Shown one piece after another: positions 1,159 through 45,611 of a DNA stretch of 64,000 nucleotides. Each line of letters begins with the position of its first letter. Position 1 is the first letter of the stretch. The notes under the pieces were generated by a model that had not been told where the DNA came from, did no database searches, and worked only from the letters and a program-made list of their open reading frames with translations. The stretch lies in contig JBLDXI010000024.1 in the NCBI GenBank assembly GCA_047495785.1, forward strand, positions 3,720,001-3,784,000, read 5' to 3'. Origin of the DNA: Lepidodermella squamata. Lineage: Eukaryota > Animalia > Gastrotricha. The translations under genes were made by a program, and so were the position numbers.

Positions 1159-1280
1159 GGGTTGAATTGGGATAAGATCCACTAAACATTTATTCGATTA
1201 TAACTCCTCGGCAACGTATTTCACACTCTTCCAACGACGCTATATAATCACAATCGACACTTGTGGACACTTTTGGAAAA

Positions 1281-20397: not shown

Positions 20398-20795
20398 ATT
20401 AATTAAATTTTTTTATATTCTAGACCACGAGCAAGGAAATCTGTGCAAAACAGTAAGTTGTCAAGAGAAAAGTGGGATTTCCAAAATTTTTCACGTCCTT
20501 AGCCTTATGCACAGTTGAGAAGAGCAAAATGCGCTGACTTTATTGATATATAACACTAGATATGTGAAAATTGTTGGCAAAATCCCATTTTTCAGCTATC
20601 AGTATTCATATTTTATTATTTTTATTGATAGCACTCGCTCACGTGCGGGATTATAATAATTGGCCTCTTAGCGGCAATGCTCATCCTCGTTCTCATCGTA
20701 ACGACAAAATGCTGCGCTGTCAATCGATAAAAAATTTCCGCAGTCCTAAAATTTACTAAAAAATTTACTTTCAATTTTTTCTCACACGAGCAAAA

Positions 20796-21578: not shown

Positions 21579-21677
21579 GTGGAGAGCAAGGAATTCGTTC
21601 TTTAACATCGAAGATTTATTAAAAAATTGCTTTCAGCAGAGTATATAACATTTGAAAGAACTGATATTAACAGTTAT

Positions 21678-22022
21678 TTATTGGTGATTATGGTGGCCCC
21701 TGGAGCGAGCTGTAGTGGCGGCTTCGACTGCACCGCTAACGCCTTTTTTATTCGTCGCCTCAGTGGCTCCACTGTTGCCTCGCTTCTGGCCGTGGTTGGC
21801 GCCATTGTCGCTAGCAGCTCGCTTCGGCCGGTTCGATCCGCCGCTGTTTCCTCTGGCGGCAGATTTGTTGTTTGGCCCTGATCTTCCTCTTGCAGCAATC
21901 TGGGTCGAATTTCTCTCCTCGGATGAGTGGCTCGAGTCTCCTTTTCCGAGAGGCTTTGACAGGACTAGCTCGACGAGAAGCACAGCAGCAATGGCCACAA
22001 TGAACAGCTTTGCTGAATGCAT
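21678..22022 (-). CDS. orphan 114-aa secreted hydrophilic peptide precursor, copy 1
   Basis: Signal peptide, then G/S/N/R/A-rich disordered region with KR/KK sites; TATAAAA upstream; two paralogues in the window. Confidence 0.8.
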   Translation of the reverse strand: MHSAKLFIVAIAAVLLVELVLSKPLGKGDSSHSSEERNSTQIAARGRSGPNNKSAARGNSGGSNRPKRAASDNGANHGQKRGNSGATEATNKKGVSGAVEAATTARSRGHHNHQ

Positions 22023-22118
22023 GGTTGAAGTTGAAAGGTGGTGTGGAGCTTTACAGTTAGAGTTGGATGTTTATTCAAGTTTTGAATCTGATGCTTTTCT
22101 GACCAAATTTCGGCTTCA

Positions 22119-22425
22119 TTTTATAGCCGAATCTACGACCGATTTGGCTCGAAAACCTGTTTACCTGAAACCAGATAAACGCATCAATACAGACATCACG
22201 TGTGTTTCAATTTTGCACGGTTGTTATGCCGTTGTTTTCACGCTTAAACGTAGAAACCACTGCGGCGTTACTTGGGCAGAAACCACTAGCGACACCGCAT
22301 TGACGTCACAACTTGTTTTGGTAGGAGCTTTCAGAAAAAAACCTTAGCCACGCGAATTTTCAAATAGACTTCCACCACCCACCACACGTATTCTCTAAAA
22401 GGCTGCGATTGTCAAATGACTCAGG
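22119..22425 (-). promoter_or_regulatory. conserved promoter of the secreted peptide (TATA, forkhead GTAAACA, E-box, CRE, AP-1)
   Basis: TATAAAA ~22119-22125, GTAAACA ~22158-22164, CACGTG ~22197, TGACGTCA 22301-22308, TGACTCA ~22417. TATA, GTAAACA and CRE are retained in copies 2 and 3. Confidence 0.55.
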
Positions 22426-23035
22426 GTGCTTAATATACTTGGTAACATTTTCAATTTCTGTTCAGTTTTTATTTGCCCTTTGTGCTTCCACATAATATTG
22501 TAAAATCGAATTTGCCAATAAAATGAATTGATCACAAAGACGTTGTTCTTTCACTTCGAAGATTCTTTTCAGGAGAGTATTATAAGACTTGGAAAGACTT
22601 GGAAGAAAACCCCTGGAGCTTCCCTGTAACCGGGTGTCATGCCGGCGTTCTTTTCTACCTGCGTTGCAAAATATTGTGAACTCGCACTCGCCAAACTGAG
22701 CGCAATGGAGCGCACTGCACCATCACGGCGTTTCGAATCCCTCAACCTGCAACTGGTTTTGTTTTTAATTTTTCCCCGTATCTGCTCGCATATTCTATTC
22801 GCAGTGATGTGAGCTTCATTCGTTATCCTTAAAACGAAGCCCGAAAAGCACGTTTGTCCGAAATAAGAACGCCTTACCGCATAGATTTCTGCATAGATTT
22901 AGAAAAAACTTATATTGATGAATTTTTTATGCGCCAGGTGTCCAGTTAAGGGAACACAGCGCAGCTTCGATTATTATTCTTGCGCCTCGTAATATCAGTC
23001 GAGTCAGTAATCAGTCAACCCAATATTTGTTGAAG

Positions 23036-24519
23036 ATGAAACTCTTTTTCGCAAAAACTTTTCCCCTACTTTCTATTACTTACTCTGTGTTCGGCGGCGT
23101 CAAAGACGACTACTCGTACTTGGGAGATGCAAATCGTAAGCCGCAAATTATTCTCAGACCGATCGGCTTAATCTGATTTCTTACAGTGAATAATTGGAGA
23201 GTAGGCGGGAACTGGGCAGGTCCTTATTTACAGTCAGACAAGCGCATAACGCTGGGCGGCAATAGTGAATGCGATGCAAAAACCCATGGTTACTTGGCTT
23301 CGACAAAAGTATGTACCTTTCTCAAATCCTCATTGCTAATTTTATGTGAGTTTTGTCGCAGAGACTGCCCACCATCCTTAGTGATATTGTCATAAATGCC
23401 ACGTTCGATTTTCGCTGCTCTGGAAGCTACGGAGCACGTCTCCTTGTCATTCCCGAATCCTTGCTAACAACTAATAACACTGTTACCTTCTACATGAACG
23501 AATCATCATTCATCGGGATAAATGTGTGGTTTACCCCTTATTATTCTCGTATTGCTACTTTAGTCGCCGGAACGCCGAAAAACGCTAGTGACTTAGGTAA
23601 CTACGTCTTGTCCTCTCGGAATGATGGAAGGAATTACGGTAGCCTCACAACCGGTGGAGTATTCAACATCATCATCACTCTTACCAAAGGAACAGACTTC
23701 AAGGTTGGTTTTCAGATTATAATTTGTGACGGGTCTTAGACAAGCGTCGCGCAAATTAATTCGAAAATTGCGCAAATAAAATATAAACGTCGCGCAAACT
23801 AAAAGGTGCAAAGTACTTAAGCAAAGTGCGACACAATAAATGATGTTGCGAATGGAATTAATTTGGGCTACGTTTTGGGTTTCTCTCATTTGTGATTGTT
23901 GACCTTAAAGGTGGATTATTCGTCGTGGAATGTTTCAGCCTTCACACCGTTCAGCTACAAAGCGGCAACAGCATTGCCTCCTCGCGATGACTGGGTTGTA
24001 GCTGTTACAAGCAATAACCGAGTCCTCCCACAGCTTCATCAGGTCATAGATTTAACTGTTTCTGATGCTGGTAAAACCAAATGATTTGGCTAAAATACTG
24101 TTCTATTTTGCTATTTGAATTAAAGTCGAGTGTGCTCTTAGCATCTGCAAAAATGGATTTTGCTCTTCACCAACAATTCCGGGTTGCAAGTGTTTACCGG
24201 GATGGACTGGAATTTACTGCGATATGCGTAATCCTACAGTCAAAGTTTTGTCGAATATGGCCTAATTTCCCATTTCCAGCCATTTGCAATGGATGCCCTG
24301 CTGGTCAGTACTGCACAGGCCCAAACCAATGCTCCTGTTTTAGCCGCTTCAAAAAAGGCCTCAATTGTGATCAGGGTGAGTTTTTTTTGTGAAACAGAGC
24401 AAAATAGAGCACTTTCTGTTATACATACAGAATTGTGTGACTGCGTCAATGCGAAGCGTTGCTCCGCGATGATGTGCGACTGCCCAGATGGATACCCAAG
24501 GCACGATTGCGGAATTTAG
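23036..24519 (+). CDS. multi-exon secreted protein with C-terminal EGF-like repeats
   Basis: Signal-like MKLFFAKTFPLLSITYSVFG; short introns; CNGCPAGQYCTGPNQCSC...NC and CDCVNAKRCSAMMCDCPDGYPRHDC. Confidence 0.6.
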
Positions 24520-24958
24520 TTCTCAATTGACAAAAATACTAGCCCATACGCTACCTTGAGAATCATTTCAACTGGCTTCACGTTCGTAGTATGTTTGTTA
24601 AACTCCGGATTACCTGATTATCGGAGGTCTAAGCTAGTTTTTGGAAACAAGACATTTTAATAAACTAAAGTAGTAAAAATGATTCCGCGAGGTATTACAA
24701 TCGGCGTTTGGATAAATCGTTAATTTTATTTCGTGGACCCTGGAACTATCCTGAACCGGCTGTCATTCCAGTGTCTTTTTCTACCATCATTAGAAAATAT
24801 TGTTTTAACGCACGAGACAGTTCCCAATGTGCTCGCATTCCCCAATAGAAAACCTGGATAGTGCAAAGACTTCATTTCCTTCACATCGAAGATTTAATAA
24901 AAATTGCTTTCAGCAGAGTAAGTATATAACATTTGAAAGAACTGATATAAAAATGTAT

Positions 24959-25303
24959 TTATTGATGATTATGGTGGCCCCTAGAACGAGCTGTAGTGAC
25001 GGCTTCAACTGCACCGCTGACGCCTTTTTTATTCGTCGCCTCAGTGGCTCCACTGTTGCCTCGCTTCTGGCCGTGGTTGGCGCCATTGTCGCTAGCAGCT
25101 CGCTTTGGCCGGTTCGATCCGCCGCTGTTTCCTCTGGCGGCAGATTTGTTGTTTGGCCCTGATCTTCCTCTTGCAGCAATCTGGGTCGAATTTCTCTCCT
25201 CGGATGAGTGGCTCGAGTCTCCTTTTCCGAGAGGCTTTGACAGGACTAGCTCAACGAGAAGCACAGCAGCAATGGCTATAATCAACAGCTTTGATGAATG
25301 CAT
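24959..25303 (-). CDS. orphan 114-aa secreted peptide precursor, copy 2
   Basis: Near-identical to 21678-22022, with the same promoter (CRE 25601-25608). Confidence 0.8.
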   Translation of the reverse strand: MHSSKLLIIAIAAVLLVELVLSKPLGKGDSSHSSEERNSTQIAARGRSGPNNKSAARGNSGGSNRPKRAASDNGANHGQKRGNSGATEATNKKGVSGAVEAVTTARSRGHHNHQ

Positions 25304-26236
25304 GGTTGAAGTTGAAGGTGTTTGAAGGTGATGAGGTTGAAGGCGTGGAGTTTTATTAAGATTTAAATTTTTTTCAAGGTTTGAATATGATGCTTTTCTC
25401 GCCAAATTTCGGCTTCATTTTATAGGCACATCCACGGCCGATTTGGCTCGGAAACCTGTTTACCTGAAACCAGATAAACGCATCAATACAGACATCAGGT
25501 GTTGCAGGTAATTTTCCGGGTTGTTATGCTGTTGTTTTCAAGATTAAACGCCGAAACCACTGCGGCGTTACATGGGCAGAAACCACTAGCGACGCGGCAT
25601 TGACGTCACAACTTGTTTTGGTAGCTTTCAGAAAAAAATTCTGCCACACGTTGTCCAATGCGCCTTCCGTCAAATGAGTCAGGGTGGCTAACTGACTTGT
25701 GTATTTCTGATTCGTTACTCTATTCAGCATAAAGTTTCTTTAACCCTGTCATTTGTTGGATCTTTGCACCTCTTTGTATAAGGGATGGTAAATTGTGGTT
25801 GGATATGGGGTATGTGGTATTAGCTGACCTGAAGAGCAGCAACTTAATCGCAGCAGTGGTGAGTTCTTAATCTTTCTTCTTAAAGGTATTTGATTTCGAG
25901 TTGCTGAATAATGTCTTCATCTGAAACTAAGTAACGGCTGTGTCCTTTTTTACTTTCTTTGCTTGATAATCGATTGGTGTCTATCGGAGATATATTAATT
26001 TCATTCAAGCCCCGTTTTCATTTGACTTGTTCACGCCATTACACACTTTAATAGCAATGCTTATCAAATGAAAAAGGGTAATATCTCAATTTGACGGCTT
26101 TTTCGTCTTAGGAACCAACTGAATGACAGCAATATTTTCTTCCAGAAATAATAACATGATCACGAACAATTCCGACATTCGTATATCAAGTAATTTTTAT
26201 TGTAATTTTTATTTAGAGTTTATCCCAAGGCCTTAT

Positions 26237-26352
26237 GTTCTAGAAAATTCTCCGATGAATGCTGGTGGAATTTTCTAGAAAATTCGGATTGCTGCATTGT
26301 CTCGGATATTCTAGGATGCTTAATCTGGAATGTTCTATTCGGCTTTATATCA
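26237..26352 (+). promoter_or_regulatory. heat-shock elements and TATA-like box of HSP20 copy 1
   Basis: gTTCtaGAAaaTTCt (26237-26251) and gGAAttTTCtaGAAaaTTCg (26267-26286); TTTATAT ~26344. Confidence 0.85.
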
Positions 26353-26484
26353 CGCCAACTCCAACAAGTCTCTGTGTATCTGCAAAGCCTGAACAAGCAA
26401 ATTTGAAATCGATTATCAACTCTCTTTCAAGTTTCATCTCTTATTCGCTGTTGTTTATTATCGTTCTGTTTCCGAGCAATTAAA

Positions 26485-27111
26485 ATGAGCTTCTGGCTAA
26501 CGAGCTACTCTCGCCCAACCGTTTTCGACTGGCCGTCGCTGGTCTGTGATGACCACCTGGCCGACTTGGCGCTGTCGAATTTCCTCGACTACGACCGTTC
26601 GTTCGAGGCCCTCGGCCACGAGATGAACCGCCTGCGCCGCAACATGGACCGCAATTTCCGCGCCTCGCAGCAGCAACTGGCGAGCGCCCTCAACAACATC
26701 GCGACGCGGCCGGGCAGTCTGCTGGAGCACCGCAGCCTGGTGAACCCGATCGAGACGGACGCGGAGGGCAACCGGCGGCTGAAGTGCACCTTCGACCTGC
26801 GGCACTTCAAGCCCGAGGAGGTGAACGTGACGCTGGACTCGAAGCAGCGCTGCATCAAGGTCGAGGCGAGCCACGAGACCAAGGACGAGCAGAACCGGGC
26901 GAGCGTGAAGCGCCACTACCTGCGCCACCTGTACCTGCCCGACGACGCCAGCATCGACCCGGCCAAGCTGGAGCTGCAGTCGAGCATGAGCCACGACGGC
27001 CAGCTCCGCATCGAGGCCCCGCTGCCGAAACTGCCGCCACCCAAGGTTGAAGCACCCCCGCAGCAGCCAGCCATTGCCGCTCCGACCCCGATCACTGTAA
27101 ATCGCATCTAA
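26485..27111 (+). CDS. small heat-shock protein (alpha-crystallin/HSP20), copy 1, intronless
   Basis: FDLRHFKPEEVNV...IKVEASHE...RHLYLPD...SSMSHDGQLRIEAPLP; C-terminal ITV (IXI/V) motif; upstream HSEs. Confidence 0.93.
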   Translation: MSFWLTSYSRPTVFDWPSLVCDDHLADLALSNFLDYDRSFEALGHEMNRLRRNMDRNFRASQQQLASALNNIATRPGSLLEHRSLVNPIETDAEGNRRLKCTFDLRHFKPEEVNVTLDSKQRCIKVEASHETKDEQNRASVKRHYLRHLYLPDDASIDPAKLELQSSMSHDGQLRIEAPLPKLPPPKVEAPPQQPAIAAPTPITVNRI

Positions 27112-27720
27112 AATAGCGGCGAAATTAAAATTGGACTTGACATTTTCTAGTGCTTGTTATCATCTCTCCGATATAAGCTCCCAGTGCTATGCGCTGTATC
27201 AATCAGTCATTTGTGATTCTAATTTCCAATAAAATAGGCTACTTGAAATCGTCAGGATTTTTTCTCTTCTGTTGGAATTGTTGTTGGGATTGCTGGTGGG
27301 AATTCCTCATAGCTTAAAACTTCTAAGTCTTTGCGGGTCGATATTTCTAATATGTATTTCTAATATATATTGATCACGAAACACGGTTCCAACGCGATTT
27401 TTTTAAATCAAACTAAGCGAATTCTTGTTGCAATTGAGTCAATGCTTGGTAACTCAGCCCGGGAAATTGTCATTTGACGCAAATACGTATAATGTCTGGC
27501 TTCTGGGAAGGCTTCTGGCTCTTAGCTGAAAATTGGCCGATTTCTTTGAAAACTTGCGTCGAAGTTTATGAAATTTAGCCAAGCCGCTATTTCAGTTGAA
27601 TTTTGAGCGGAAAGTATAAAAAAACCATGTAAATCACGGAGATTGCTTACTTAACTCATCAGTTTCAAAATATTTTTTTTCAATTTTAAATTTTCGTATA
27701 CGACATATATGTCGGAATGT

Positions 27721-28121
27721 CTATTCGTACATATTATGTACGCGACAATTGCTATTCGTACATAGTTTCGATATGCTTTTTTCTAAGATGAACGACTTGC
27801 TCAATTTCCATCCCATTAATCAAATTTTTTGTGCGCTGCTAGCTGGCCATTAGGCCTAATTTCTCCCTTCAAAAAATCACCCTATGGTTGAGTCGCAAAA
27901 TGGCATTTGAATTGTTTTTCACGACTCTAGCGTGAATACTTTGGAAGATAGTCTGACGAAATTTGACCACTAGATGGGCCTCACTTTGCTGCATCTACCT
28001 GTGAAATTCACTGTTATCATCGGCTAATGACGAATTTCCACACCCGTTTGAATAACTCTGAAAAATCGCGAAAAACTATGTACGATTAGCAATTTTCGCG
28101 TACATAGTTATGTACGAATAG
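27721..28121. mobile_element. MITE-like element with ~48-bp imperfect TIRs
   Basis: CTATTCGTACATATTATGTACGCGACAATTGCTATTCGTACATAGTTT (27721-27768) is mirrored at ~28074-28121. Confidence 0.6.
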
Positions 28122-28300
28122 CTTGACTCTTATTTTTTTTAATTAAATGAATAAAAAATTATAGTATTCCGGTATTACTATACTACTAAAATAAATAAAA
28201 TGAAAAATTTGAAAAAAGTTTATATTAAAAATAGAAATAATATTATCAGCAAACTATTTTTATATTACTTTGTATAAATTTATTATCAAAATGGAAAAAC

Positions 28301-28762
28301 CTTTTTTTGGCAGCAAAAATCTCTTTTTGGCAGCAGAATCCTCTTTTCGGCAGAAAGTACTTTTTTGGCAGCAAAGACTTTTTCAATTGCCATAGTGGCC
28401 AAACCGTGAGGGTCACTATGGATCATCATATATCAATCGATTGCTGTTATCAAGGGCTATCGATTGGTGTCCGATCGAATTCCGCGCGGAACTTTTGGCA
28501 ATACGATTTTTGCCTTCGAACTTGAAAAATGCGCAATATTCGCGTTTTTTGGCCAAAACGTGACCCTAAATGTGCCGTGTGGACTTCGATCGGACACCAA
28601 TCGATAACCCTTGATTACAGCAATCGATTGATATATGATGATCCATAGTGACCCTCACGGTTTGGCCACTATGGCAATTGAAAAAGTCTTTGCTGCCAAA
28701 AAAGTACTTTCTGCCGAAAAGAGGATTCTGCTGCCAAAAAGAGATTTTTGCTGCCGAAAAAA
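28301..28762. mobile_element. foldback/MITE-like palindromic element
   Basis: ~190-bp near-perfect inverted arms (28301-~28495 and ~28567-28762) with ~19-bp TTTTGGCAGCAAA subrepeats. Confidence 0.75.
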
Positions 28763-29285
28763 GCATGGTCCATCAAAATATTTTTGTAAATGAATAAGCT
28801 GATTTGTGTTGATGACATGGCAGTTTAATTTCGTCATTTCTTCTACATTAGCGAGGATTTCGTCATCATACCTAATATAAATGCCCATGAATATATAACA
28901 CTCTTTTACCCGTGCTGTAGCTTTATAACATTGAGAATTTTCCATATTAATATAGTTATATAGATAATTTTTATGGGAGTTTGTCCGCACACCCTACAAC
29001 CACACACGTTTCTAATAAAAAGCACTTATCAATGAGAATAACCTGAATTTTTTTCAGTTATAGGTATTGAAACTTTCGTAATAGATAAAAACACTTTCGC
29101 AAGAACTTTGCAAAATGATAAAAAACATTTTTATTTCCAAACATATTTCATTTCCGACCCATCGTTCAAGTTAAAAACATTACCAGTTTTGACAAGGTTT
29201 CAAATGTTATATTTACAGAGGGGGTGCTTCTTTACAGGGTGAAAATCTCGACGAGCTCAAGGCAACAAAACAAAGAAAATAAAAA

Positions 29286-30462
29286 TTATTTCAAAAGTTC
29301 TATCAGCTTTTCTCGTGGTGGTACTTTGGTAAGATTGTGCCGAATAACTAGCCCAATAGCCGGAGTAGCAGGAACAAGAAAACGTTTTCCATTCTGAAGC
29401 ACCTCGCGCAAGACCGTATCCGGATCGGAGCGCATAATATTTTCTGGCAGGGTGACAGACGCTACTTTCAACGTGCTTTTATCCAGCAGTTTCAGAATTT
29501 CCGTTGTATGAGGATACGTTCGCTTGGCATCGTCCACGGTTTTGATTGCATGTTCAATCTGACCCTCCAAAGTCTCCCAAACGCTATCTTCTAGCGTCTT
29601 CTTTCCTGCATCCGTCAACTTGCCATTGTGATCTCTTTCCGCGAGTGAATAGTTTAAGACAATATTCTCGTTTAGAAGTGGGAAGCCTCCAAGCACTGAC
29701 CATACTGTCGACTTCAAGCCTACAGCATCTAGATCAGTGAATAGAACCTGAAATTCGGGAACCCTCCATAGTTGGTCTTGATTATACGGCTCAACATTTA
29801 TCACATCCTGTCTCCCTGTACTCAATAGTCCTGGGTCAACAGCATTTGGAGCGCCATCCACAATGACGCGAAGCCCATAATTTTCTGTAAGGGTACGAAC
29901 GGCTCCAGTCAGCTCGGCGCAAGGATTCTTTGCAACTTCTCCCCTTTCACTTGGACGAATCACAAGTAATGGCGATATTCCGGTCAAGCGCTTGAATAGG
30001 TTAATCGCCCACAAAGCGCGATATTCAAGATAAAAGTATGGAAATTTCGTGACTTCACACAATGCCTCGTAAATAATCTCCTTCTCACCAGTACCCGCAG
30101 GAATCTGTAACAAATAAAATCAACAAAAATTTTCACAAATCTCTAACAATATTGCTTACTCTGCATTCAACTACTCCACGTTTATTGCTAGTAAACGTGT
30201 CTATCAAACACGACTTCCCAACACCTCTGGCTCCAGTAATAACGATGTATCTTTGATGGCCCCAGGAATAGTTTTGAAGCCGTTCAAGTTCTTCTGTCCT
30301 AATAGAGCGCGGACGCAGATCAGGAGACTTCAACAGCAGACCAAGTGTGGACAGCGAAGAGAAGCCAGCTATTCCTACAACGCTTCCAACAGCCCATTTT
30401 ATAGATGGTCGCTGAAAGACTCGTGCCATCGGTATCCAATATTGTCGCAGTTTCTTAAGCAT
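29286..30462 (-). CDS. uncharacterised P-loop NTPase with an N-terminal hydrophobic segment (2+ exons)
   Basis: Walker A YIVITGARGVGKS; intron 30105-30159; Walker B-like RVIVDG; VWSVLGGFP. Confidence 0.65.
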
Positions 30463-31124
30463 AAATTCAGCATAATCAGCTCTATAGGAAGCGAAATGGA
30501 GAGTACAGGAGAGTATTTCTCTTCAATACATCAATATGTATGTCGTACCGTTTTAAGCGATCCTCCCAAAAGGTAATTAGTATAACCCATGAGGCAATAT
30601 GCCCAAGATGGAGATTTCAGATATCGCTAAGGACAATAATTGACAGTATCTTGGAAGTCCAAATATTTCCTCCTGTAGCCTAAAAAGGTTGCTCACTGAT
30701 TAAATTCCAAACTCAGTGGGTTGATAGAGATATAATAAAGCTTTCCCGAAGTTCAAGCGCCAAAAACCGACTAATAGAATTTCGTCATCTGAAGCAATTG
30801 ATCAGTCTAAAAAGTTAACCCAACCCCCTAGTTCACATAGATCGGATTTCATGGAAGTTGAAAGAGTCTCTAGGATCAACTTCCGTGGAAAGAAGGAAGA
30901 AGGCATGGAAAAGTCGGTGAATGCAATGAAAAAGCCTTTCAACATCGTGATAATATTTTATTGCCGTTGAAACGCTGTAAAAAAATTCAGAAAAAAATCA
31001 CAAGCTACGTTTGCTCGCGATATTTTTCGTGAGATTCATGCATAGATAAAAAGCCAGCAGTTTTTGAGAGAAAAACATCGAATTGCTATAAAAAATTGAG
31101 ATATCAGCAGGTCAAAACGCAATT

Positions 31125-34207: not shown

Positions 34208-35647
34208 TCAAAGCTCGTTGTAGTAGTTGTGTTTATGCTTGCTTGGACTCGCCGCGTGGTCGTCTTGCACAGATTCAGGCTGGTTATATTCGGCATTGAG
34301 AATGTGGGCGAAAACTTCGAGTTCACGAATGCTTGTCGAAAGACGGCCGATTGCGTTGAATAACGCCACAACTTCTTGCCGGCGCAACTGCGGCAGCGGT
34401 TGATCGTCCGGCCAGAATAGAATTTTCAACGCTGTGCCTAAGCCATGAGTTTGCAACGTTCCCCATAACTTGCATTTATCACATCCTACGCAGCCCATAA
34501 TTCTCGAGATATTACGGAATTTTTCCCGAAATTCGTCTCGCAACTTGATTCTAACGATATTGCCATCTAGATGAGCCAGTGTTCCAAGAGATGAAAACAA
34601 CTCCCTCTCGTCGAAATGCTGCGGAAATCCTCGAACCACATTTAGCAGATCTTTGACGCCCTGTCTGACTTCTTCGTCACTATCATCATCGCCAGTAAAA
34701 AACGCTTCTTTCTCCTCAAGATAAGGCGCAATTTTAGCCAAAGCGCGTAACTCAACAAGATAGAGGAAATATAGATTTCGCAGGCGAGAAGCTCCATGTC
34801 CGCCAGTCAACAAATTGTCGAAACGTCGCTTGAATTCTTCGAAGTTGGGGCCCCATGCCGATGGGCCGGAATTCAGAATGTCGCTAGTATCTGCGATTTT
34901 GTTGTAATACTTTGCGCAAAGATGAACTGTGATAGACGTGTGAAGACCAGATAATAATCGGTAAAATACTCGCTGCTCCAGACAGAGGTGATCCAAATCA
35001 TTCGTCCAGTAAAAAAAGTCACGCTCGCTTTTAAAACAGTTCTCGGAATATATTGCGCGCCATATCCGGTGGGCAGAAGGGCCCTTATAGCCAGTGAACC
35101 GCTCCGGATTAAGAGTTAAATCTACGAATTCGCCCTCGCCGGTATCGTTTGCTTCTTCCATTTCACAGAAATCATAGAGAGCTTCATCATACGCGCGCCA
35201 CGATCGGAATGCTTCAACTTGAGCAGGTTCTAAGGTTGTGTCGATTTCGCTCAGTATATCATGAATTTCAGGGTTCGCCGACGACTTTTGCGGTGGCGGT
35301 GCCGAGCATTGTTCGCCAGAATTTTTGTCGCTTTCGACCAAAATGCCTTTCGGAAGATCTTTCGCAGCGCAAGGTTTTACTTGACAGGACTGGGAGGCAC
35401 ACGCGCCGTCATCAGGCCAAAAGGGGCAAGGCTTTTTCATATTTATGCGATAAAACCGGAAATAGTTCGAGTTTAGAAGACTAGCAAGGCGAGGATAAAA
35501 TTTGAGATTGTTGAAAGCATCCACGCCATCAACGGAGCAGGTCTCGCAGTCGTCGATCGGACCACGCCATGTTCCTGTACAGAAAGTTATCAGTACTGCA
35601 GCTATGAACCATGTGGAATCGCCAAAGAGGCGTTTAAGCGGTCTCAT
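34208..35647 (-). CDS. ERO1: ER oxidoreductin 1
   Basis: YFRFYRINMKKPCPFWPDD, VDLTLNPERFTGYKG, NISRIMGCVGCDKCKLWG (CxxCxxC). Confidence 0.96.
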   Translation of the reverse strand: MRPLKRLFGDSTWFIAAVLITFCTGTWRGPIDDCETCSVDGVDAFNNLKFYPRLASLLNSNYFRFYRINMKKPCPFWPDDGACASQSCQVKPCAAKDLPKGILVESDKNSGEQCSAPPPQKSSANPEIHDILSEIDTTLEPAQVEAFRSWRAYDEALYDFCEMEEANDTGEGEFVDLTLNPERFTGYKGPSAHRIWRAIYSENCFKSERDFFYWTNDLDHLCLEQRVFYRLLSGLHTSITVHLCAKYYNKIADTSDILNSGPSAWGPNFEEFKRRFDNLLTGGHGASRLRNLYFLYLVELRALAKIAPYLEEKEAFFTGDDDSDEEVRQGVKDLLNVVRGFPQHFDERELFSSLGTLAHLDGNIVRIKLRDEFREKFRNISRIMGCVGCDKCKLWGTLQTHGLGTALKILFWPDDQPLPQLRRQEVVALFNAIGRLSTSIRELEVFAHILNAEYNQPESVQDDHAASPSKHKHNYYNEL

Positions 35648-36471
35648 TGTGCAAAACCTATCTCATGCGAAGGTAACGCTCTACTTTAACTTTGTAATGA
35701 AATGCTATATTAAAAAAGAAGAAGTAAGAGCCACTAAAAAAGAAATAAATAAAGGCAATAAAGAATAAAGAGCACTATGAGTTGAAAAACCTCCAAGTAA
35801 CCAACATTACCAAAGTTCCAAGTTTACTTCGAAGTAACTAGTGGCACAATGTATGTACGTAATACGTTAATGTTAAACTAAAAATACAAGCATCACCACC
35901 ACAGCAAGCTCAAAAACTTCCACTGAGCTTCTCCGATCAGCTCGTCAACGTTTCCAAACGGGAAACAGGAAACAACAGTGACGGAAACGAGTTGTTTTCT
36001 CGAAGCGCTTGATTTTGCCGACGTGTCGCTATCTCGACTTTTCCCGGCAAAATCGCAATCTTCACAAATTTGTTAAAGATAATCCCAAATAATTCTTAAC
36101 TCTTTTTCAAATGATATACAGTGCGCACAAAAAGTCAGGTCCCATCCTGTTTTCCGCTGCAGCGAGAGCTACCGCTCAGAAATTAAAATAAATTAAAAAA
36201 TTGAGAGAAAATATGAATTCCGTTGCGAAATTTGAAAAATAAATGCACAGAAAAACATGACGCTAAAACCCTCAATCCAGGTTGAGCGGGGAAAGTTGTG
36301 AAGTAAGGGATTCTTTGTTTTGGATTATCTCGAAATCTAGGACGGTTGCACCCCAGGATTTCTCGAATCTACCAGTCGTCAGGTTTCGAAGAATCCGATT
36401 TAATAACAGAATACACATGTTACCGTCTTCAATTCTGATATACATACCCTTGAAATAGAGCACTTTCTGCA

Positions 36472-36727
36472 AAAAAACGACATTTTCCACTGGATTTGAA
36501 CATAATTTTTACTTTCCCTCAGATCCAAGCACGGTAACCACATAGTTTTTTTAGCATGCCTTAAAGGTTGAAACTCCGCGAGTATTTTTGAACCAAAAAT
36601 ACTCGCGGAGTTTCAACCTTTAAGGCATGCTAAAAAACTATGTGGTTACCGTGCATTGGATCCTGCAGCCAGGCCAAAGTAAAAATTAATTTGATCCCAA
36701 TTCAAAGTGGAAACTATGTCCGTTTTA
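36472..36727. repeat. long palindrome/hairpin inside the DD41D element
   Basis: Core arms 36529-36590 and 36594-36654 pair with a single T bulge and a 3-nt loop; imperfect pairing extends outward. Confidence 0.9.
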
Positions 36728-36812
36728 TTTGCGTGCTTTAAAGAATCGAGATATGAGATTAGTTTTTCGTAAAGAAATCCATAAGGTTCCGTGTTCTTTT
36801 TCTAGATTCACC

Positions 36813-37460
36813 ATGTCTTCGCCCAGCTCTGCCAGTTCTGATCTTCAGGACGAAATTAACTGCAAAGTCTACGATATTTGCCGGAAACCCGCGCCTTCCT
36901 CAATCTTTTCGACACCATATATTTTTTACTTCTTCTCCGACTTCTTCTCGTTTTCTCTGACATCGTCCTTGATCATTTTAATGTTCTGCGTCCTCAAGAT
37001 CACGTCTTTCGCCCTGTATGGTAAATTTTTCAGTCTCATCTTTTGCATCATTCGACTTGTTTTAATCCTGGCTTTGTTGCTTTATTTTAGTGGATTTTCT
37101 TTTCTTCTTGGATTTTTGTTTCTTGCCATTGATTTTCATCCGTTTTTTCTTCATATTTTTACTCAGTCAAAGCATTATTGCGCTCTGCTGATGAAATTTC
37201 CTCCTTCTACGGATAAACCTATCTCGCTTGCCGAATTTGATCGCCTTTCAATAGATTACACGAATTCGGAGTTGCAAAAGCTGAGAAATTACGTCATGAG
37301 TCCCCAATGCAATCAATGGAACCTCGTTCTGCGCCTTCGCAATGCAACACAGTTCGCATATGCTATCGATAACAATGAGATGAGGGACTGCAACTTTATG
37401 CCCGAAGTCGGTGATGAGAAATCTGAGGCTGACAGCATTAGCTCACTTGATTCGGATTGA
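36813..37460 (+). CDS. transposon cargo: truncated NEMP/TMEM194-like inner nuclear membrane protein (215 aa)
   Basis: Several hydrophobic segments followed by KFPPSTDKPISLAEFDRLSIDYTNSELQKLRNYVMSPQCNQWNLVLRLRNATQFA, matching the recalled NEMP motif FPP..LL.EEEY....ET..AL.ELR.YC.SP.C..W..V.RL..P.RFA; acidic tail. Confidence 0.75.
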   Translation: MSSPSSASSDLQDEINCKVYDICRKPAPSSIFSTPYIFYFFSDFFSFSLTSSLIILMFCVLKITSFALYGKFFSLIFCIIRLVLILALLLYFSGFSFLLGFLFLAIDFHPFFLHIFTQSKHYCALLMKFPPSTDKPISLAEFDRLSIDYTNSELQKLRNYVMSPQCNQWNLVLRLRNATQFAYAIDNNEMRDCNFMPEVGDEKSEADSISSLDSD

Positions 37461-37642
37461 GAACTTATGCCGTAATTTCTCTACTCACAACTCCGAACTA
37501 GTCTAATCTATTGCGAGACTTTCAATTAGGCATTTAACTTTGTTCTCTTCATCTCCATTTTTCATGTCCCTAATCTGTAATTGTGTAACTACGAAAATGA
37601 AATTTTTACTAATTTTCAGTCTTTTGTTTTATAGATATTATT

Positions 37643-38770
37643 ATGTTCACAACTGAGGAGAGAATATTTGCTTTCAATAATACCAAAGTTCCCTACCGAC
37701 AGTTTTGTGAAGCTTGGCGAAATCGGTTTGAAAGTAACCCCCCGAACAGAAAATACCGCCTACGTCTTGTCAAGAAATTTAATCAGTCAGGATCGATCCA
37801 TAACTTGCCGCGATCAGGTAGACCGCGCTCTGCTAGAACGGACGAAAATATTTATCACACTGCGATTGCGTTATGTGAAGACATTGCTGACCCCGAAGTT
37901 AATATTTCAGTTACGAGGCCGCGTGTCGAGGATATTGCGGACCATCTTATGATTTCCAAACAAAGCGTGCGCAATATCATACGTTTCAACTTGAAATGGC
38001 GATGCAAAACTGCATGCAGAGTCCATCAGCTGAATCAACAAGACATTTATCGCCGAGCAAACTTTTGTAGTGCAGCTCGAAGAATGCTGGAGATAGATCC
38101 GAACTTCCTGGATATGATAGTGTGGACCGATGAAGCACTGTTCACGCTCAATGGAACAGTGCGTACTAGTTACTTGCGCTATTGGGGCGACCCGGCTGAT
38201 CGAAGGAAATATTACTCAAAGCGCCGTGAGCACAGTGGCGTCATGGTATCCATTGGTTTGTGGAGATATGGCATTCTGGGTCCATTCTTCTTTGATGACT
38301 TGCCACGGCTTGAGCCAAACCGACCCAAGGATAGGATCAACGCGGAAAAATATTGTCAGCTTCTTAAAGAGCGCTATTTTCCTGAAATTAATAGGCAATT
38401 TCCAATGACCGACAGCGAGTTGCGATCTGATGTTTGGTTCCAACTCGACGGCGCGCCCATTCACACCGCCACTCAAACAAAGTATCTGCTTAACTTGCAT
38501 TTTCCGGAGCGCTGGATAGGAAACAAAGGGCCTATGAATTTTCCTCCTTACTCGCCCGATTTAACGCCACTGGATAATAGTTATTGGGGCGTTCTTCGTA
38601 CGCGGGTTTATCGCCGTCGGCCATCTACTCTTCCTCATCTCAAATGGCTCATTGAAGAGGAGTGTAAAGCCATGTCACTGGACTATATTGAAAAAATTTG
38701 CACAGTGGAAATGAAAAGACGAATCAAACTTGTGTGTCAAGAAAACGGAAACTTCATCGAACACATTTGA
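37643..38770 (+). CDS. DD41D (rosa/Visitor) transposase, intact 375 aa
   Basis: HTH region with RSGRPR; WTDEALF, FQLDGAPIH and PYSPDLTPLD, with 41 residues between the 2nd and 3rd Asp. Confidence 0.95.
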   Translation: MFTTEERIFAFNNTKVPYRQFCEAWRNRFESNPPNRKYRLRLVKKFNQSGSIHNLPRSGRPRSARTDENIYHTAIALCEDIADPEVNISVTRPRVEDIADHLMISKQSVRNIIRFNLKWRCKTACRVHQLNQQDIYRRANFCSAARRMLEIDPNFLDMIVWTDEALFTLNGTVRTSYLRYWGDPADRRKYYSKRREHSGVMVSIGLWRYGILGPFFFDDLPRLEPNRPKDRINAEKYCQLLKERYFPEINRQFPMTDSELRSDVWFQLDGAPIHTATQTKYLLNLHFPERWIGNKGPMNFPPYSPDLTPLDNSYWGVLRTRVYRRRPSTLPHLKWLIEEECKAMSLDYIEKICTVEMKRRIKLVCQENGNFIEHI

Positions 38771-38996
38771 CAGTTTATTTTCGTTGACGATAATTTATTT
38801 GAATTTTTGTATTTGTATGTTGAGTTACTAGTCAAATATTGTTTTACTGTCTTCCTAGTCAACATGCATGCAATATTAAAATTAAAATAAAATGACTTGT
38901 AGCACCAGACTTTTACTATTGAGGCACGAAATTATAGGCAAGATTGTAATGCAACGAATATATTTTAGTCAGTGCAGTGATCATGCAGATGAAACC

Positions 38997-39950
38997 TTAT
39001 CTGCGTCTTCTTGGGACAGTGAAGCGTCCAGTGCCGTCTCTGCTTACTTCTTCCACGAGCTGAGTAGGCAGCCAGCTCTTAGCACGCTCATACATCCTCT
39101 TTCCGAGGCCAATTATGATATACCAGACATCAGATTTCGTAAAGACGAAAATCCATCTAATGATAATGCAGATGGTGGATTCTTCCAGCATCAAGCTCTA
39201 AAAATATCGAAGTCAGGTTTATTGAGAAAGTCTGTCTTGGGTACTTACGAGAGCCAAACCGACAGTCGTGTAATATGTCGCGGCAATTATGAACTCCCCG
39301 ATGGCACAAAATAATATTTGTAGCAGCAATTCCTCGCAGCCAAGCTTGAGAAATGATTTGCACATCATCCATAGCGCAATTATAATGAGGTAAAAAATCA
39401 ATTGGCCTTTTTTGAACGATTCTTGCTGATGAGGTAGCATTAGAATTTGGGAGATAGCTACTCTCCAAAGAGGATATTCCAGAATGAATTCGTTAAACTT
39501 TGTCCTGACTTCCAAAAAGCCGGCGAAAAAGTCATTGACCGTGTCTATCGCAATCGATTTGGCATCAAATTTAACACCGGCGCAATAGCCCGGAATTTCA
39601 GGATAATACGCTGCGTAGACGTCCAGATCTTTCTCATCATAACTTGCATAGCAAGTCTTCCAGTTCTCGGCTGCGCTGCAATTTTGCGTCTTCCTTCCTT
39701 CTCGCTCAGCTTCGCAAACAACAAGCTCGAATGCTAAGCGGCGATAATCAGGAGTCTCATCACTTTTGCATTTCGCGTCAGCATTAGAAATCCATTCTTT
39801 GAAACATTTTTGCTTTCTCGTTAGGAGCATTTCTTTGAATTTTCTTCCAGAAATGATTCGCAATTGGTCAACTTCAAGAGAACTCGTTTTATCGGCAGGG
39901 ATAACGCCCTGAACTAACATCGGCAGCCAGATTGCAATAAGACGGATCAT
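38997..39950 (-). CDS. transposon cargo: miniaturised Brambleberry/GEX1/Kar5-like nuclear-envelope fusion protein (~300 aa, 2 exons)
   Basis: Signal peptide; six-Cys domain C-x11-C-x17-C-x11-C-x8-C-x22-C with RLAFELVVCEAEREGR; C-terminal TM segments; phase-0 intron 39198-39248 joins exon 38997-39197; basic tail PRRRR. Confidence 0.78.
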
Positions 39951-40098
39951 TCCAGCAACTTGCAAGTAAAATTAATATAATAATTCCTACATCAAAGATA
40001 CAATCTAGAATCAAAGAAAGTTATTAAGTAAAATTTGAGCTAAAATCTGAATAGAAAAATTACATATGTTGCAAAATGAGCATAGTAAACATGTAATT

Positions 40099-40531
40099 TT
40101 AGTCTAGTTTCACCCCCGCACGATCAAAAGTCACTTGCTCGTTGTTAGCAACAAACTCAATTGCACCTCCTCTGCCCTCCTCGACAGCTACAGGACGGAC
40201 TCGCCTTTTCAGCGTCTTCTTAATTAGTAATGTGAACAGGATGATTATGACTAAAAACATCACCGCCGCCACAGCCGCAAGGCCGACTATTGCTCTATGT
40301 ACAAAAGAAGATATGACTCTATTATTGTTGACGAAAACAAATATCATACTCCTTGTGGTCAAATAATTGCACCGGGGTACTGGCTGACGGATGGCTTTGG
40401 GCCTCTGGTTCAGGTTCTTCCGACGTTCCAGCGCTGTGTAGGGATGTGGCTGTGGCTGTAACTGTGGTAGGTTGCAAGGTCGGTTGGGTTGAGCAGATCG
40501 CCCACAAAAGGCAAAGGGGAGATTCATCCAT
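40099..40531 (-). CDS. transposon cargo: small single-pass membrane protein with T/S/P-rich ectodomain (~125 aa, 2 exons)
   Basis: Intron 40295-40349 joins ...PTTVTATATS...FDHKE to AIVGLAAVAAVMFLVIIILFTLLIKKTLKRR (TM plus basic stop-transfer). Confidence 0.6.
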
Positions 40532-41779
40532 GATTTTCTATAAAATTCTATTTAGAATGAGGGTAAGACGATGAGAAGATCTTGTGAGCAAATGTGCAGG
40601 AGATTACAGCGTCGAGACTACGGAAATAGCAACTGACGACTGCGGGCGAGTGCGAGAAAGGCTGAGCAACTGACCTACTATGTACTTCTAAACCGCCTTT
40701 GTTTCCCGTTTCCCCCCGTTTCCCCTGGCAACAGACGTCCGTTATTTTAATTTTAATTCATAAAAATTATTAATTATCAATTTTGACAACATATTTCTAA
40801 TTATTTTCAAATTTTACCCGCGAATTTCCGGGTGAGCGGGGTGGGACCTGACTTTTTGTGCGCACTGTATAGTTCGTTTTGGCAAGATTTGACAAATAAA
40901 ATAAATGTGAAAAACAAAATACGACACGAACCGCGAAAAGAAAGTCAGCTGCGTCTTATCTTTCGCCGGGTTTCGCGTCCGCCGATGTGAGCATTTATCT
41001 GCAGCCATGACTTTTCATGTCTTTGTAAACAAGGAACAAGGTTGCTTTATTACAGTCAAAACTTCTCGAGAGACACCCGATGAATGAAGAGGTCGTAGAT
41101 CGTAGACCCGTTCGGCACCAACTGTTCAAGTTCTTTTAAATCTCGACCGGCGGCGCCCATCTTATTTGTCACGGGGAAACCTCATGCAAAGCCTCTGGTG
41201 CTCTCGCCCGAAATTGGGTCATTTTGCTCATTGATCTGACACAAGACTTCTTTCTTTTGTCTTTTCCATCATTGGGCGTTCGGCTTTGTCGCTTTCGCCG
41301 TTGTCTTTTCCAGACCATCTCCGGTCTTGGGAAGACATTTTCGCAGCTATGCCTTTGATTTCTCGCCTTCGTGGTATTTGATTTTCTATTACCTACCGCA
41401 TTTTATCGAATGATAGCCATGATGAAATAATGAAAAGAAAATCGGTCAATCGAGGGGGCTTTTATTCCGAGGGAGGCAATTATTAGCTCCGAAACGTTGC
41501 GTCATCACTTTAGCCAAGTCCATAGATTTAGGCGTGGGCAGCCGCCAAGAGATTTTTGCCAGGTTCAAATACTTGAAACGTTGATGCCGAAGTAATTCCG
41601 CTGTCGGAAAAGCTATTCTGAATCATTTGGGCCAGGTGATGTTCCACGTTTCAACCTGCTTTTCAACCTGCTGGTTCCTGAAATTGATAGTTACTACAGT
41701 CGTCAACTATTTCGTTTGTGTCGTGAAGCTTCTTGAAAGTTGCAGTCATTGTTTTTAGGTTTTTACACTTCTCACAGTA

Positions 41780-43237: not shown

Positions 43238-45611
43238 ATGGATGAAACAACTTCACTGGTTGGCTCTCGCGACCACGGCAAATCGATCTATTCGGACTCG
43301 GTTTACGGCGGCACGAGCTCGGTTAGCATTACAATTCAAAGCGCGGCAGGGTCTGTTAGGCCTAATACGAGCTCAATAGCCTTGAATGGCGATTCAGAGG
43401 AAGAAAAAGGTTGAAAAACGCTCGAAAATTTTGAAAAACATAAGTAACTTCCTGAATTTTTGCAGATGAGACCCCTTATTACATCTATCATGAACCTGTG
43501 AGAAGTAACGTAATTAATGACGAGGACGAAGAAGAGGATGACGACGATAAAACTGCGCCATTTGACCCAATTCCCTGCTGTCCGTCGGTTTCTCGTCGCC
43601 TAGCTGGCCTTTCTTGCATTTCAATCACGAACATGCTTGTAATGTGTCTCGTTCTTGTCGGCTACGGCATGTGCTTCTCGCTGTTCTCTCCCTTCTTCCC
43701 CAACGAAGCCGGCAGAAAAGGCATGAGCCCCACTGTTGTCGGTCTGCTATTTGGCTCGTACGAACTCGTCATGTTCATCGGGACGCCGCTTTCGAGTAAA
43801 GCCATCGGCCATCTAGGCCTGCGGTTCATGATTGGGTCTGGCATGTTACTGGCCGGCGGGGCGACTATGCTGTTCGGTGTTGTTGATAAATCACCCGATG
43901 GTATCATATATATCGTCCTGTGCTTTGCGGTTAGAATTGTTGAAGCGGCTGGGGCTAGTTTGTACCTAACAGCTTCGTACTGCGTTGCTGGAAATATGTT
44001 CCCGGACAACATAGCCTTTGTTTACTCGTAAGTTCTTCGTTTATTCGTGGGGAGATGGAGAATTTGAAAAATCCTGAAAATTTAAACCCTGAAATGTACA
44101 GAATTATGGTCGTTTAAGCCTTAAATTTTCATTTTTTTAGATTGATGGAAACGGCCAATGGCGTTGGATCGATGATTGGCCCATCAGCGGGCGGTTTGTT
44201 GTATACAGCTGGCGGATTTTACCTGCCATTTGTCGCTGTCGGAGGCGTTTTACTGCTATTCGGCTTATTTTCAACCCTCTTATTGCCCGCAGAAGCGACT
44301 GGGACTGAAGTTCTCGAATTTGATGATGACGGAAATCCGATACCGGCTAATAAGAAGAAAGAGCCGCTGCCGTGGTCGCGGCTATTCAAATCGTCCATCA
44401 CCGCCTGGGTTATCATGTTCACAGAGGCGTTGGCTGCTATTTTAAGCAACTACCCCGAACCGACTATATCGATCTACTTCGAATCACTGGGTCTCAAAAA
44501 TCCGGCGACGGTCGGGGCGATTTTTCTGGCTTCGACTATTGTCTACACGATAGCATGCGTGCTATTCGGCCATCTCGCAGATAAATTTGCCGATAAATGC
44601 TACTTGGTTCGTATTTTTTCATTTAACCTTGCAATTTCTCACCTATTTGGAAAATTTGCTAAAATTTCTACTCGCCGGAGCTTGTAATCTTGTAAGTCAG
44701 CTCGAAAATTTCGAATTGAGTAAATTTTTGCGATATTCGTATAGAATCAAAGTTTTCATATTATTTTGGGTGATTATTTTTACTTTTTTTTGACCGATTT
44801 TCTTATAATTTCATGAAAAAATTTAAAATTTTTACCTTCATTTTATTTATTAGATTTATTAGAAATTTATTAGATATTTAATTACGAATTATAATTTTTT
44901 CTTGAATTGAATTCTCGTTGAAGCTTTCAGAGAAATTCGCTATTTGAAAACCAATTTTACTTTAATTTTAATTTTCGAAATATTATCTATGTTCAGATAA
45001 TGGCGGTAGGTGCGCTGATCACAGCCATTTGCTTCTTCCTAATGGGTCCACCACCTTTCATCGACAACTTCATCGCACCATCAATCGCACTAACAGCTGC
45101 CGCGGAAATCGCGCTATACAGCGGAATCGCTATGATCCTAGTCCCCGTACCTCGAGCTTTGTTGAATGCCGCGAAAGACTGCGGTTTCACCGAGGGACTC
45201 GAAACCTCAGCTATGGTAGCCGGTCTCTACAACGGCCTGTGGTTCATGGGCGGTTTCGCCGGGCCACCCATTGCCGGTTTCCTGCTCGAGCGGGTCGGAT
45301 TTCAATGGGGCGCTGCCATTATGAGCGCAACTGCCATGGTTTTGTTCACAGTGCTGATAGTCGTGTCGTTTTTCGACCGAATACCGGCCTGTGTCGTGAA
45401 GCGGCAGTACGACTACGCGGTTTTAGTTGACGACGAATCGGTCCGAGGCGATGAGGATGCGAAAGAGCCGGACGAAGGGGTTGATATTTACTACGACCCG
45501 TCATCGCCTGTGCACCCGCTTCAAGCGAGTAGCCGACGTGGCAGTGTGACTTCATTCGTCGGAAGACGGTCTTCCATTAGAGGCTTGGTGGCGGTACCAA
45601 TCAACGTCTAG
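43238..45611 (+). CDS. MFS transporter, SLC18B1-like (multi-exon)
   Basis: FSLFSPFFPNEAGRKG, FAVRIVEAAG, METANGVGSMIGPSAGGLLYTAGGFYLPF, GGFAGPPIAGFL. Confidence 0.85.

Follow-up and report, generated by a model that had tools for sequence, protein, structure and literature searches.

A DD41D Tc1/mariner transposon with Brambleberry-like and NEMP-like membrane-protein genes in the genome of the gastrotrich Lepidodermella squamata

Introduction

Can a transposon of the Tc1/mariner type, the textbook minimal element with one gene and two ends, come to carry genes that work for its own spread? This question is raised by a locus in the genome of the gastrotrich Lepidodermella squamata. The stretch of DNA analyzed in this study (64,000 nucleotides, positions 3,720,001 to 3,784,000 of the forward strand of contig JBLDXI010000024.1, GenBank assembly GCA_047495785.1; hereafter the window) contains an element of this type, in which a transposase gene is accompanied by three genes for membrane proteins (genes A, B, and C). 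The element is an insertion with a transposase and three further genes between perfect ends; genes A and B are homologous to nuclear-envelope families, and cargo under purifying selection is present in all close relatives. We consider it probable that the locus is an intact, recently inserted, and autonomous cut-and-paste transposon of a DD41D clade that inherits its transposase together with membrane-protein genes, and that this cargo acts for the element at the nuclear envelope.

Structure and insertion of the element

The following features were identified in the element (window positions, strand, description).

36117..36118, no strand: left TA target-site duplication, read from the sequence, in a local context of TATA
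36119..36144, +: left terminal inverted repeat (TIR), 26 nt and perfect, starting with CAGTG and extended imperfectly to 36147
36519..36667, no strand: near-perfect palindrome or hairpin of about 150 bp, upstream of gene A
36813..37460, +: gene A, uninterrupted, encoding a short NEMP-like (Pfam PF10225) multi-pass membrane protein of 215 aa
37643..38770, +: intact DD41D Tc1/mariner transposase gene without intron, 375 aa
38997..39197, -: exon 2 of gene B, with the last hydrophobic segment, a basic tail ending in PRRRR, and the stop codon
39198..39248, -: intron of gene B, 51 nt, GTAAGT...TTTTTAG, the in-frame join of which gives a 300-aa protein
39249..39950, -: exon 1 of gene B, with a signal peptide, six-cysteine domain, short helical linker, and the first transmembrane helices
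40099..40294, -: exon 2 of gene C, with one transmembrane helix, a 45-aa tail, and the stop codon
40295..40349, -: intron of gene C, 55 nt, GTATGA...ACATAG, with the sole donor phase that joins both open frames
40350..40531, -: exon 1 of gene C, with the N-terminal motif MDESPLCLLWAIC and a Thr/Ser-rich segment
40842..40867, -: right TIR, 26 nt and perfect
40868..40869, no strand: right TA target-site duplication, read from the sequence

The element measures 4,749 bp between the TIR ends. The TIR sequence (CAGTGCGCACAAAAAGTCAGGTCCCA) was found in exactly two copies in the window, one at each end, and was never recovered in 100 shuffles; chance TIRs, of which none are expected in shuffled sequence, were rejected. 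The inverted repeat of the ends reaches 33 nt at 97% identity, with a perfect core of 26/26 nt, and TIRs beginning with CAGTG are Tc1-like. Both flanks read TATA, so that the duplication is consistent with TA and indistinguishable from the local context. The perfect ends, together with the intact catalytic triad described below, suggest recent activity.

An initial annotation, made from the sequence alone, had proposed perfect 26-bp TIRs with a TA duplication around 4.7 kb, an intact DD41D transposase, a long hairpin, and three uninterrupted membrane-protein genes. The ends, the transposase, and the hairpin held up. The three genes are likewise open and encode membrane proteins, but only gene A is uninterrupted, whereas genes B and C each contain one short GT..AG intron in our gene models. 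The assignments given to these genes (NEMP, Brambleberry/GEX1, and a single-pass T/S-rich protein) were all recovered by the analyses reported below.

The window between 11.7 and 46.6 kb is collinear with contigs L029, L030, and L031 of a related animal. In these contigs, ERO1 and the TPR gene, which are divergently transcribed in L029, are separated by about 0.4-0.7 kb (about 400 bp in L029), versus 6.1-6.5 kb in the window, where the element lies between them. Searches of the host-like contigs of the relative for A, the transposase, B, and C gave no match, and no element was found between ERO1 and the TPR gene. Since the collinear contigs have these two genes adjacent without the element, the element in the window is an insertion, and the ERO1-TPR interval of the relative is the empty orthologous site. 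The view that the cargo does not consist of syntenic host genes, on which the initial annotation depended, is borne out by these contigs.

An 18-nt motif, GATTTTGC(C/T)GACGTGTCG, with a TGACGTG core similar to the cAMP response element or unfolded protein response element (CRE/UPRE-like), is present at window positions 36010-36028 and at about 9805-9825 in L029. The two species agree at 17 of 18 positions of this motif, which in both lies between ERO1 and the TPR gene. It is located about 90 bp from the insertion point and is apparently reversed in orientation relative to ERO1 between the species.

Transposase

The transposase has the catalytic residues D163, D269, and D311, with spacings of 105 and 41, and all three aspartates are invariant in the alignment of homologs wherever the sequences are complete. 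The protein is assigned to DD41D by this catalytic spacing, and the nearest named transposases, which are arthropod proteins, are about 30% identical. A total of 87 homologs were found, with a top identity of 62%. Among PDB sequences, phmmer matched the transposase to SB100X (Sleeping Beauty, 8e-6) and Mos1 (1e-5). The Pfam model DDE_3 scored 23.7 bits, under its cut-off of 28.6, and the N-terminal helix-turn-helix models DUF4817, HTH_32, and HTH_29 each scored under their cut-offs. A scan of JGI metagenomes with the transposase alignment detected distant relatives only (≤33% identity), none of them with cargo, and a scan of IMG/VR gave no match. Exact look-ups of the transposase and ERO1 of the window among public assemblies were likewise negative.

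Cargo genes

Gene B is, by homology, a Brambleberry/GEX1/Kar5-type gene. A phmmer search with its exon 1 against 1.84 billion representative proteins returned seven matches, five of which were metagenomic relatives. The sixth was the Nematostella vectensis protein A7RG01, named 'Protein brambleberry' in UniProt (E 3.5e-4, residues 30-132 versus 33-137), and hhalign of the B-family profile against this protein together with the seventh match gave 97.7% with an E-value of 2.5e-12 over 147 columns. The six cysteines of B (C49, C61, C79, C91, C100, and C123) align without gaps with C54, C66, C84, C96, C105, and C128 of the Nematostella protein and are also kept across the B-family alignment. Six conserved cysteines in a cysteine-rich domain are the hallmark of Kar5, GEX1, and Brambleberry (PMC4291462). 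Additionally, the hydrophobic residues 1-19 of B form a signal peptide, which hhalign pairs with that of the Nematostella protein.

The spliced product of gene B in our gene model is 300 aa long, compared with 553 aa in Nematostella, and its exon 2 has homologous exons in L008 and L001, two of the related loci described below. The AlphaFold2 model reaches a predicted local distance difference test score (pLDDT) of 72-89 over residues 30-130. The linker that follows is about 60 aa long, half of the roughly 120 aa in Nematostella, with helices at 135-167 modeled at pLDDT <55. In Kar5, GEX1, and Brambleberry, one or two coiled coils separate the cysteine-rich domain from the membrane, where B has at most a doubtful one. 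Hydrophobic segments lie between residues 179 and 263, with modeled helices at 183-200 and 206-227. B thus resembles the known family in its signal peptide, luminal six-cysteine domain, and C-terminal transmembrane helices, and differs from it in total length, in its shorter linker, in the replacement of the long C-terminal tail by a short basic one, and in being borne by a transposon. No Pfam model matched B, a result that is uninformative because none matches the Nematostella Brambleberry either. When the B model was compared with PDB and BFVD by Foldseek, no hit reached an E-value of 0.001.

The C-terminal ends of B proteins in related elements of subfamily III are AT-hook-like (RPGRPRKR in L003, 2978-3424; KPGRPRKN in L002, 3038-3580), and the tail in L008 is RRGRR, alongside PRRRR in the window. 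These basic or AT-hook-like ends suggest a predicted DNA-binding tail.

According to its profile match, gene A is a shortened NEMP in which the last membrane helices and the C-terminal region are kept. The Pfam NEMP model (PF10225) matched A with 35.6 bits, over the gathering cut-off of 28.7, with residues 75-183 corresponding to profile positions 129-239 of 249. The protein has 3-4 hydrophobic helices followed by the conserved NEMP C-terminal region, and lacks the remainder of the full architecture, namely the N-terminal signal peptide, the luminal part, and the first helices. It shares with the NEMP family the above-cut-off match over the last transmembrane helices and the C-terminal region, and differs from it in its length of only 215 aa, in the missing N-terminal parts, in being transposon-borne, and in its restriction to one subfamily of elements. 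A homolog in locus L032 (34% identity, E 7e-27) scored 28.8 bits against the same Pfam cut-off of 28.7, and a 201-aa protein with a weak NEMP match occupies the equivalent position on the P0001 contig. A word-based homolog search with gene A gave no match, and its relatives came from genomic context alone. A PDB sequence search with the A profile returned nothing meaningful, and the AlphaFold2 model (pLDDT 50) was too poor for a structure search.

Gene C has no recognizable family and encodes a Thr-rich single-pass membrane protein, the spliced product of which is 125 aa long with a single hydrophobic peak at residues 59-91. Its N-terminal C-x4-I-C motif is conserved and was also seen in L001 and in L007, where the homolog begins with MDDSPLCLLHGIC.

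Related elements and co-inheritance of the cargo

Metagenome assemblies of ENA are the source of all the best transposase homologs (45-62% identity), and three of these samples also gave host-like contigs. The relatives examined are metagenome contigs, of which only L003 and L002 have both element ends. Their contents are as follows.

Subfamily I (transposase 57-62% identical to that of the window), P0001 contig of 4,694 bp, known from called genes alone: weak NEMP match, transposase, then a 234-aa gene on the opposite strand
Subfamily I, L032: homolog of A directly upstream of the transposase
Subfamily I, L007: homologs of C and B and the transposase, arranged as in the window
Cargo of the subfamily I type, L008: C-like gene and B beside a hAT fragment, without a DD41D transposase
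Subfamily II, L001 (transposase 45%): transposase, then B and a Thr-rich single-pass gene on the opposite strand
Subfamily III, L002, L003, L004, and L005 (44-50% by tblastn): transposase right after the left TIR, with a Brambleberry-like gene on the same strand
Subfamily III, L002-L004: one or two single-pass membrane genes on the opposite strand

The element in L003 is complete, with TA|CAGTG ends at 56 and 4927 and a length of 4,872 bp, as is that in L002, which spans about 142 to 5409 (about 5.3 kb). The gene order of the window, in which A and the transposase face B and C on the opposite strand, recurs in the P0001 contig, L032, and L007 as far as their contents reach. A Brambleberry-like gene was present in all seven informative loci, those with sequence other than the transposase (L001, L002, L003, L004, L005, L007, and L008), and four of these also have a single-pass membrane gene. 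The hidden Markov model (HMM) of the B family matched L004 (1.5e-26), L002 (7e-23), and L005 (1e-8), which were outside its training set, as well as L001, L003, L007, and L008. Neither the host-like contigs nor 20 loci whose transposases are distant gave a match to it. The HMM of the A family, run over the related loci, matched L032 only. From this distribution, with B in all subfamilies and A in subfamily I only, it follows that the clade inherited the Brambleberry-like gene from its ancestor and that the subfamily of the window acquired the NEMP-like gene later, as judged from the loci examined. By the same reading, most members of the clade carry a Thr/Ser-rich single-pass membrane protein too.

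Divergence of the cargo follows that of the transposase. Within subfamilies, transposase identity is 59-71% and that of the cysteine-rich domain of B is 43-58%; between subfamilies, the values are 45-55% and 19-29%, respectively. The single-pass gene evolves faster. Synonymous divergence (dS) is saturated, being not computable in most pairs and 1.3-4.9 in the remainder, and its ratio to nonsynonymous divergence (dN/dS) was accordingly unobtainable for most pairs. Within subfamilies, the transposase has a dN of 0.22-0.58 and the cysteine-rich exon of B one of 0.33-0.54. This pattern of identities and saturated dS fits co-inheritance under long-term purifying selection rather than repeated capture or a neutral passenger. 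The initial annotation had argued that random capture of the cargo was improbable and that family members should hold more than a transposase; the Brambleberry-like gene in every informative locus, with proteins conserved at saturated synonymous sites, and the NEMP-like gene upstream of the transposase in L032 and the P0001 contig agree with both expectations.

Several other properties of the related loci were observed. The transposase gene of subfamily III has a short intron directly before the third aspartate (TPL | DFSxWG), at about 1375-1411 in L003 and also in L002, L004, and L005. In L008, the C-like/B module (1487-2791, -) adjoins a hAT-type open reading frame (ORF), the C-terminal dimerization domain of which scored 18.6 bits, below the Pfam cut-off of 21.4; this arrangement could reflect a nested insertion or an exchange of modules. 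Genes for transposases of the Mutator-like element (MULE) type are located within a few kb of the DD41D elements in L001 (3274-4245, -) and L005 (2786-4090, -), and these relatives therefore sit in transposon-rich DNA.

Possible functions of the cargo

Cargo that is conserved in this way must bring the element a benefit. Kar5/Brambleberry proteins mediate the fusion of nuclear envelopes, among them those of the karyomeres of early embryos (PMC4291462). NEMPs are inner-nuclear-membrane proteins that are required for fertility and support germline nuclei (PMC7455189), and Nemp1 binds BAF according to Mamada 2009, as that work is cited in PMC7455189. Because both identifiable cargo proteins descend from such nuclear-envelope families, we infer that the cargo would act at the envelope of germline or embryonic nuclei, with its products inserted in the endoplasmic reticulum (ER) and nuclear envelope of germ cells or early embryos and serving the element rather than the host. 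The functions suggested in the initial annotation, namely nuclear access, karyogamy control, and toxin-antidote-like drive, are speculative.

The transposase would move the whole 4.7-kb unit between TA sites, as expected from the established chemistry of its family. The likeliest mechanism for the cargo, which we put forward tentatively, is the handling of the excised element at the nuclear envelope. In this scheme, A would contact the BAF/chromatin layer through its NEMP-like tail, and B would bind DNA through its basic or AT-hook-like tail. Envelope-wrapped DNA would then be able to return to the main nucleus by means of the fusion-type luminal domain of B. In combination, these actions would lower the loss and self-integration of an unusually large mariner-type element. 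In its widest form, the proposal is that a small transposon lineage took over Brambleberry and NEMP as accessory machinery with control over the fusion of nuclear envelopes or the tethering of chromatin in germ cells or zygotes, and that this machinery either returns excised DNA to the nucleus and avoids self-integration or biases inheritance by interfering with the fusion of pronuclei (karyogamy) or karyomeres. This is possible, although doubtful; if true, the element itself would govern nuclear-envelope fusion or tethering in germ cells or zygotes.

Several points weigh against a nuclear-envelope role of the cargo in an active transposon. The NEMP-like gene is missing from both complete relatives, L002 and L003, and is not essential to the clade. 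Gene A is truncated and matches only the last 45% of the NEMP profile, and B is shortened relative to its family, so that either protein may be absent from the nuclear envelope or inactive there. In subfamily III, the single-pass proteins have the C-terminus ...SSSVV, which would better suit a PDZ-binding signal at the plasma membrane. The contacts proposed for the tails of A and B would both be purely conjectural steps. Tc1/mariner transposition in vitro requires no accessory protein. In addition, the 64-kb window holds a single copy of the element, and we infer the mobility of the family in the host genome solely from the perfect TIRs and intact ORFs.

The main alternative, which appears rather improbable, is a selfish drive, with the membrane proteins acting as a toxin-antidote system or as one that interferes with karyogamy. 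If deposited in gametes, a dominant-negative Brambleberry-like protein could, for example, disturb the fusion of pronuclei or karyomeres, and another cargo protein made by carriers could rescue it; the transposon would in this way gain by transmission distortion on top of transposition. The co-inheritance of two or three membrane proteins, encoded in two compact and convergent pairs of genes, would suit such a system, as would the retention in B of the luminal six-cysteine domain with a shortened linker, which is expected of an interfering form. Every major domain of yeast Kar5 is essential for nuclear fusion (PMC4291462). Defects of plant GEX1 delay or block karyogamy and give haploids (PMC13763932, PMC12205866), and the semigamy and haploid-induction phenotypes of GEX1 mutants make a karyogamy-interfering drive thinkable; in nematodes, mobile elements with selfish incompatibility genes are known (bioRxiv 10.1101/2022.07.12.499685). 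However, of the cargo genes only the Brambleberry-like one occurs in every subfamily, and the NEMP-like gene is confined to subfamily I, so that any partner in a drive system would need to differ between subfamilies. Moreover, no similarity to known toxins or antidotes was found.

Less probable still is a role of the cargo unrelated to the nucleus, at the ER, plasma membrane, or vesicles, for instance as a fusogen or adhesion module that moves DNA between cells or individuals, in which case the likeness to nuclear-envelope proteins would reflect ancestry. Single-pass proteins with a signal peptide, a mucin-like Thr/Ser-rich ectodomain, and the subfamily III C-terminus noted above point in this direction, as does the co-occurrence of widely diverged elements in the same samples. 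On the other hand, both identifiable cargo genes derive from nuclear-envelope families, the basic or AT-hook-like B tails of L003 and L002 fit contact with DNA, and neither a viral nor a fusogen structure was matched by Foldseek in PDB or BFVD.

It is very unlikely that the cargo consists of functionless host gene fragments picked up as neutral passengers in the manner of Pack-MULEs. DNA transposons are well known to capture gene fragments (PMC6431247), and A and B are shorter than the host-type families. Nevertheless, the cargo ORFs have stayed open in elements with saturation at synonymous sites, the B domain and the transposase have similar dN values, and the six cysteines and transmembrane segments are preserved. 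The occurrence of the Brambleberry-like gene in 7/7 informative relatives and the conserved gene order within subfamilies argue against passengers, as does the autonomy of the elements, unlike that of Pack-type elements; transposase identities of 45-62% exclude the relatives being one recent family. This explanation is already largely refuted. The least credible explanation is that no cargo transposon exists, and that host genes lie between solo ends or two elements or form a domesticated immobile remnant, for which the single copy in the window might speak, but which is contradicted by the empty orthologous site in the relative, by perfect TA-flanked TIRs that exactly enclose transposase and cargo, by the same modules between the TIRs of L003 and L002, and by an intact transposase with its three catalytic residues.

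Other features of the element and its surroundings

The hairpin upstream of gene A has arms at 36529-36590 and 36594-36654 that are perfect except for one additional T, with a folding energy of -119 kcal/mol (z = -20.8). Its arm had no further match in the window or in any related locus examined, and a comparison of the element, the hairpin, and the related loci with Rfam detected no RNA family.

The genes of the element are arranged as two convergent pairs, namely A and the transposase on one strand (183 bp apart) and C and B on the opposite strand (148 bp apart). Acceptor-like sites (..TTTCTAG, ..TTTATAG, ..CACAG, and ..TTCAG) were observed 2-8 nt before the starts of A, the transposase, C, and some host genes (36806-36812, 37628-37642, and 40532-40545, and also 41771-41779 and 44991-44999); those of A, the transposase, and C themselves lie 5-8 nt ahead of the start codon. 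These sites and the close same-strand pairs may reflect spliced-leader trans-splicing and operon-like units. An ATG ORF of 140 aa antisense to B (38892-39314, +) was rejected as probably spurious, with no homolog in L007, L008, or L001. A call resembling it is also present on the P0001 contig.

The window has about one gene per 2.5 kb and encodes IFT144/WDR19, a U2 small nuclear RNA, and further animal-type genes. ERO1 (34208-35647, -) is 64% identical to the metagenomic protein P0102, which is carried by L029-L031, and at best about 50% identical to named proteins, about equally for molluscs, insects, chelicerates, and a brachiopod. By its best hits, the host is a protostome-like animal with a compact, gene-dense genome. 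The contigs L029, L030, and L031 are 14-28 kb long (samples ERZ27333047, ERZ27332993, and ERZ23486764), and their gene order is collinear with the window over about 35 kb. Within this region, window positions 20400-31100 comprise about 10.7 kb, and the corresponding stretch of the collinear relative (L029, 13678-14127) is only about 450 bp long. Located in this additional DNA are two copies of a gene segment (21640-22324 and 24921-25624, 90-96% identical), a gene for Hsp20 (26485-27111), a foldback whose arms measure 219 nt (28291-28773), and a pair of 34-nt inverted repeats (27735-28106). Further RNA genes are that for the U2 spliceosomal RNA (6820-7015, -, 159 bits), tRNA-Arg(ACG) (59877-59951, -), and tRNA-Ala(CGC) (60140-60211, +).

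Comparison with known elements

The cargo theme points to an unexplored interface of transposons with germline nuclear architecture, and the elements offer natural shortened variants of Brambleberry and NEMP, two proteins with poorly understood mechanisms. They also provide a testable idea of how large mariner-type elements might cope with the loss and self-integration of excised DNA, or of a new type of drive.

The element shares with described DD41D elements (Visitor/VS and rosa) and with Tc1 the TA duplication, short TIRs, and a DDD transposase with a second spacing of 41 residues. In described DD41D elements, by contrast, the transposase is the sole gene; those in bees are 1,024-2,258 bp long and encode only a transposase (PMC8472432). 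The window element departs from this simple structure of 1-2.4 kb, with 4,749 bp and four genes, three of them conserved additions to the transposase.

Pack-MULEs and transduplicating DNA transposons similarly hold host-derived coding sequence between the TIRs of a cut-and-paste element. Pack elements, however, are non-autonomous and carry fragments that are mostly decaying, whereas the window element is autonomous and has complete cargo genes with starts, introns, and stops. Starship/Enterprise with Spok in fungi, Teratorn in fish, and nematode Mavericks with selfish cargo are large mobile elements with accessory genes for their own spread. They reach sizes of tens to hundreds of kb and rely on integrases or recombinases of other types, whereas the element in the window is small and of the Tc1/mariner type. 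For cargo with a drive function, the Mavericks offer a possible precedent (bioRxiv 10.1101/2022.07.12.499685).

A review of large cargo-carrying eukaryotic elements includes no Tc1/mariner case (PMC6431247), and our full-text literature searches returned no paper that ties Brambleberry or NEMP to a transposon. A clade with nuclear-envelope cargo is thus not described in the literature searched and represents a cargo-bearing form of a well-known transposon type, which shows that even elements of this minimal kind can evolve accessory functions.

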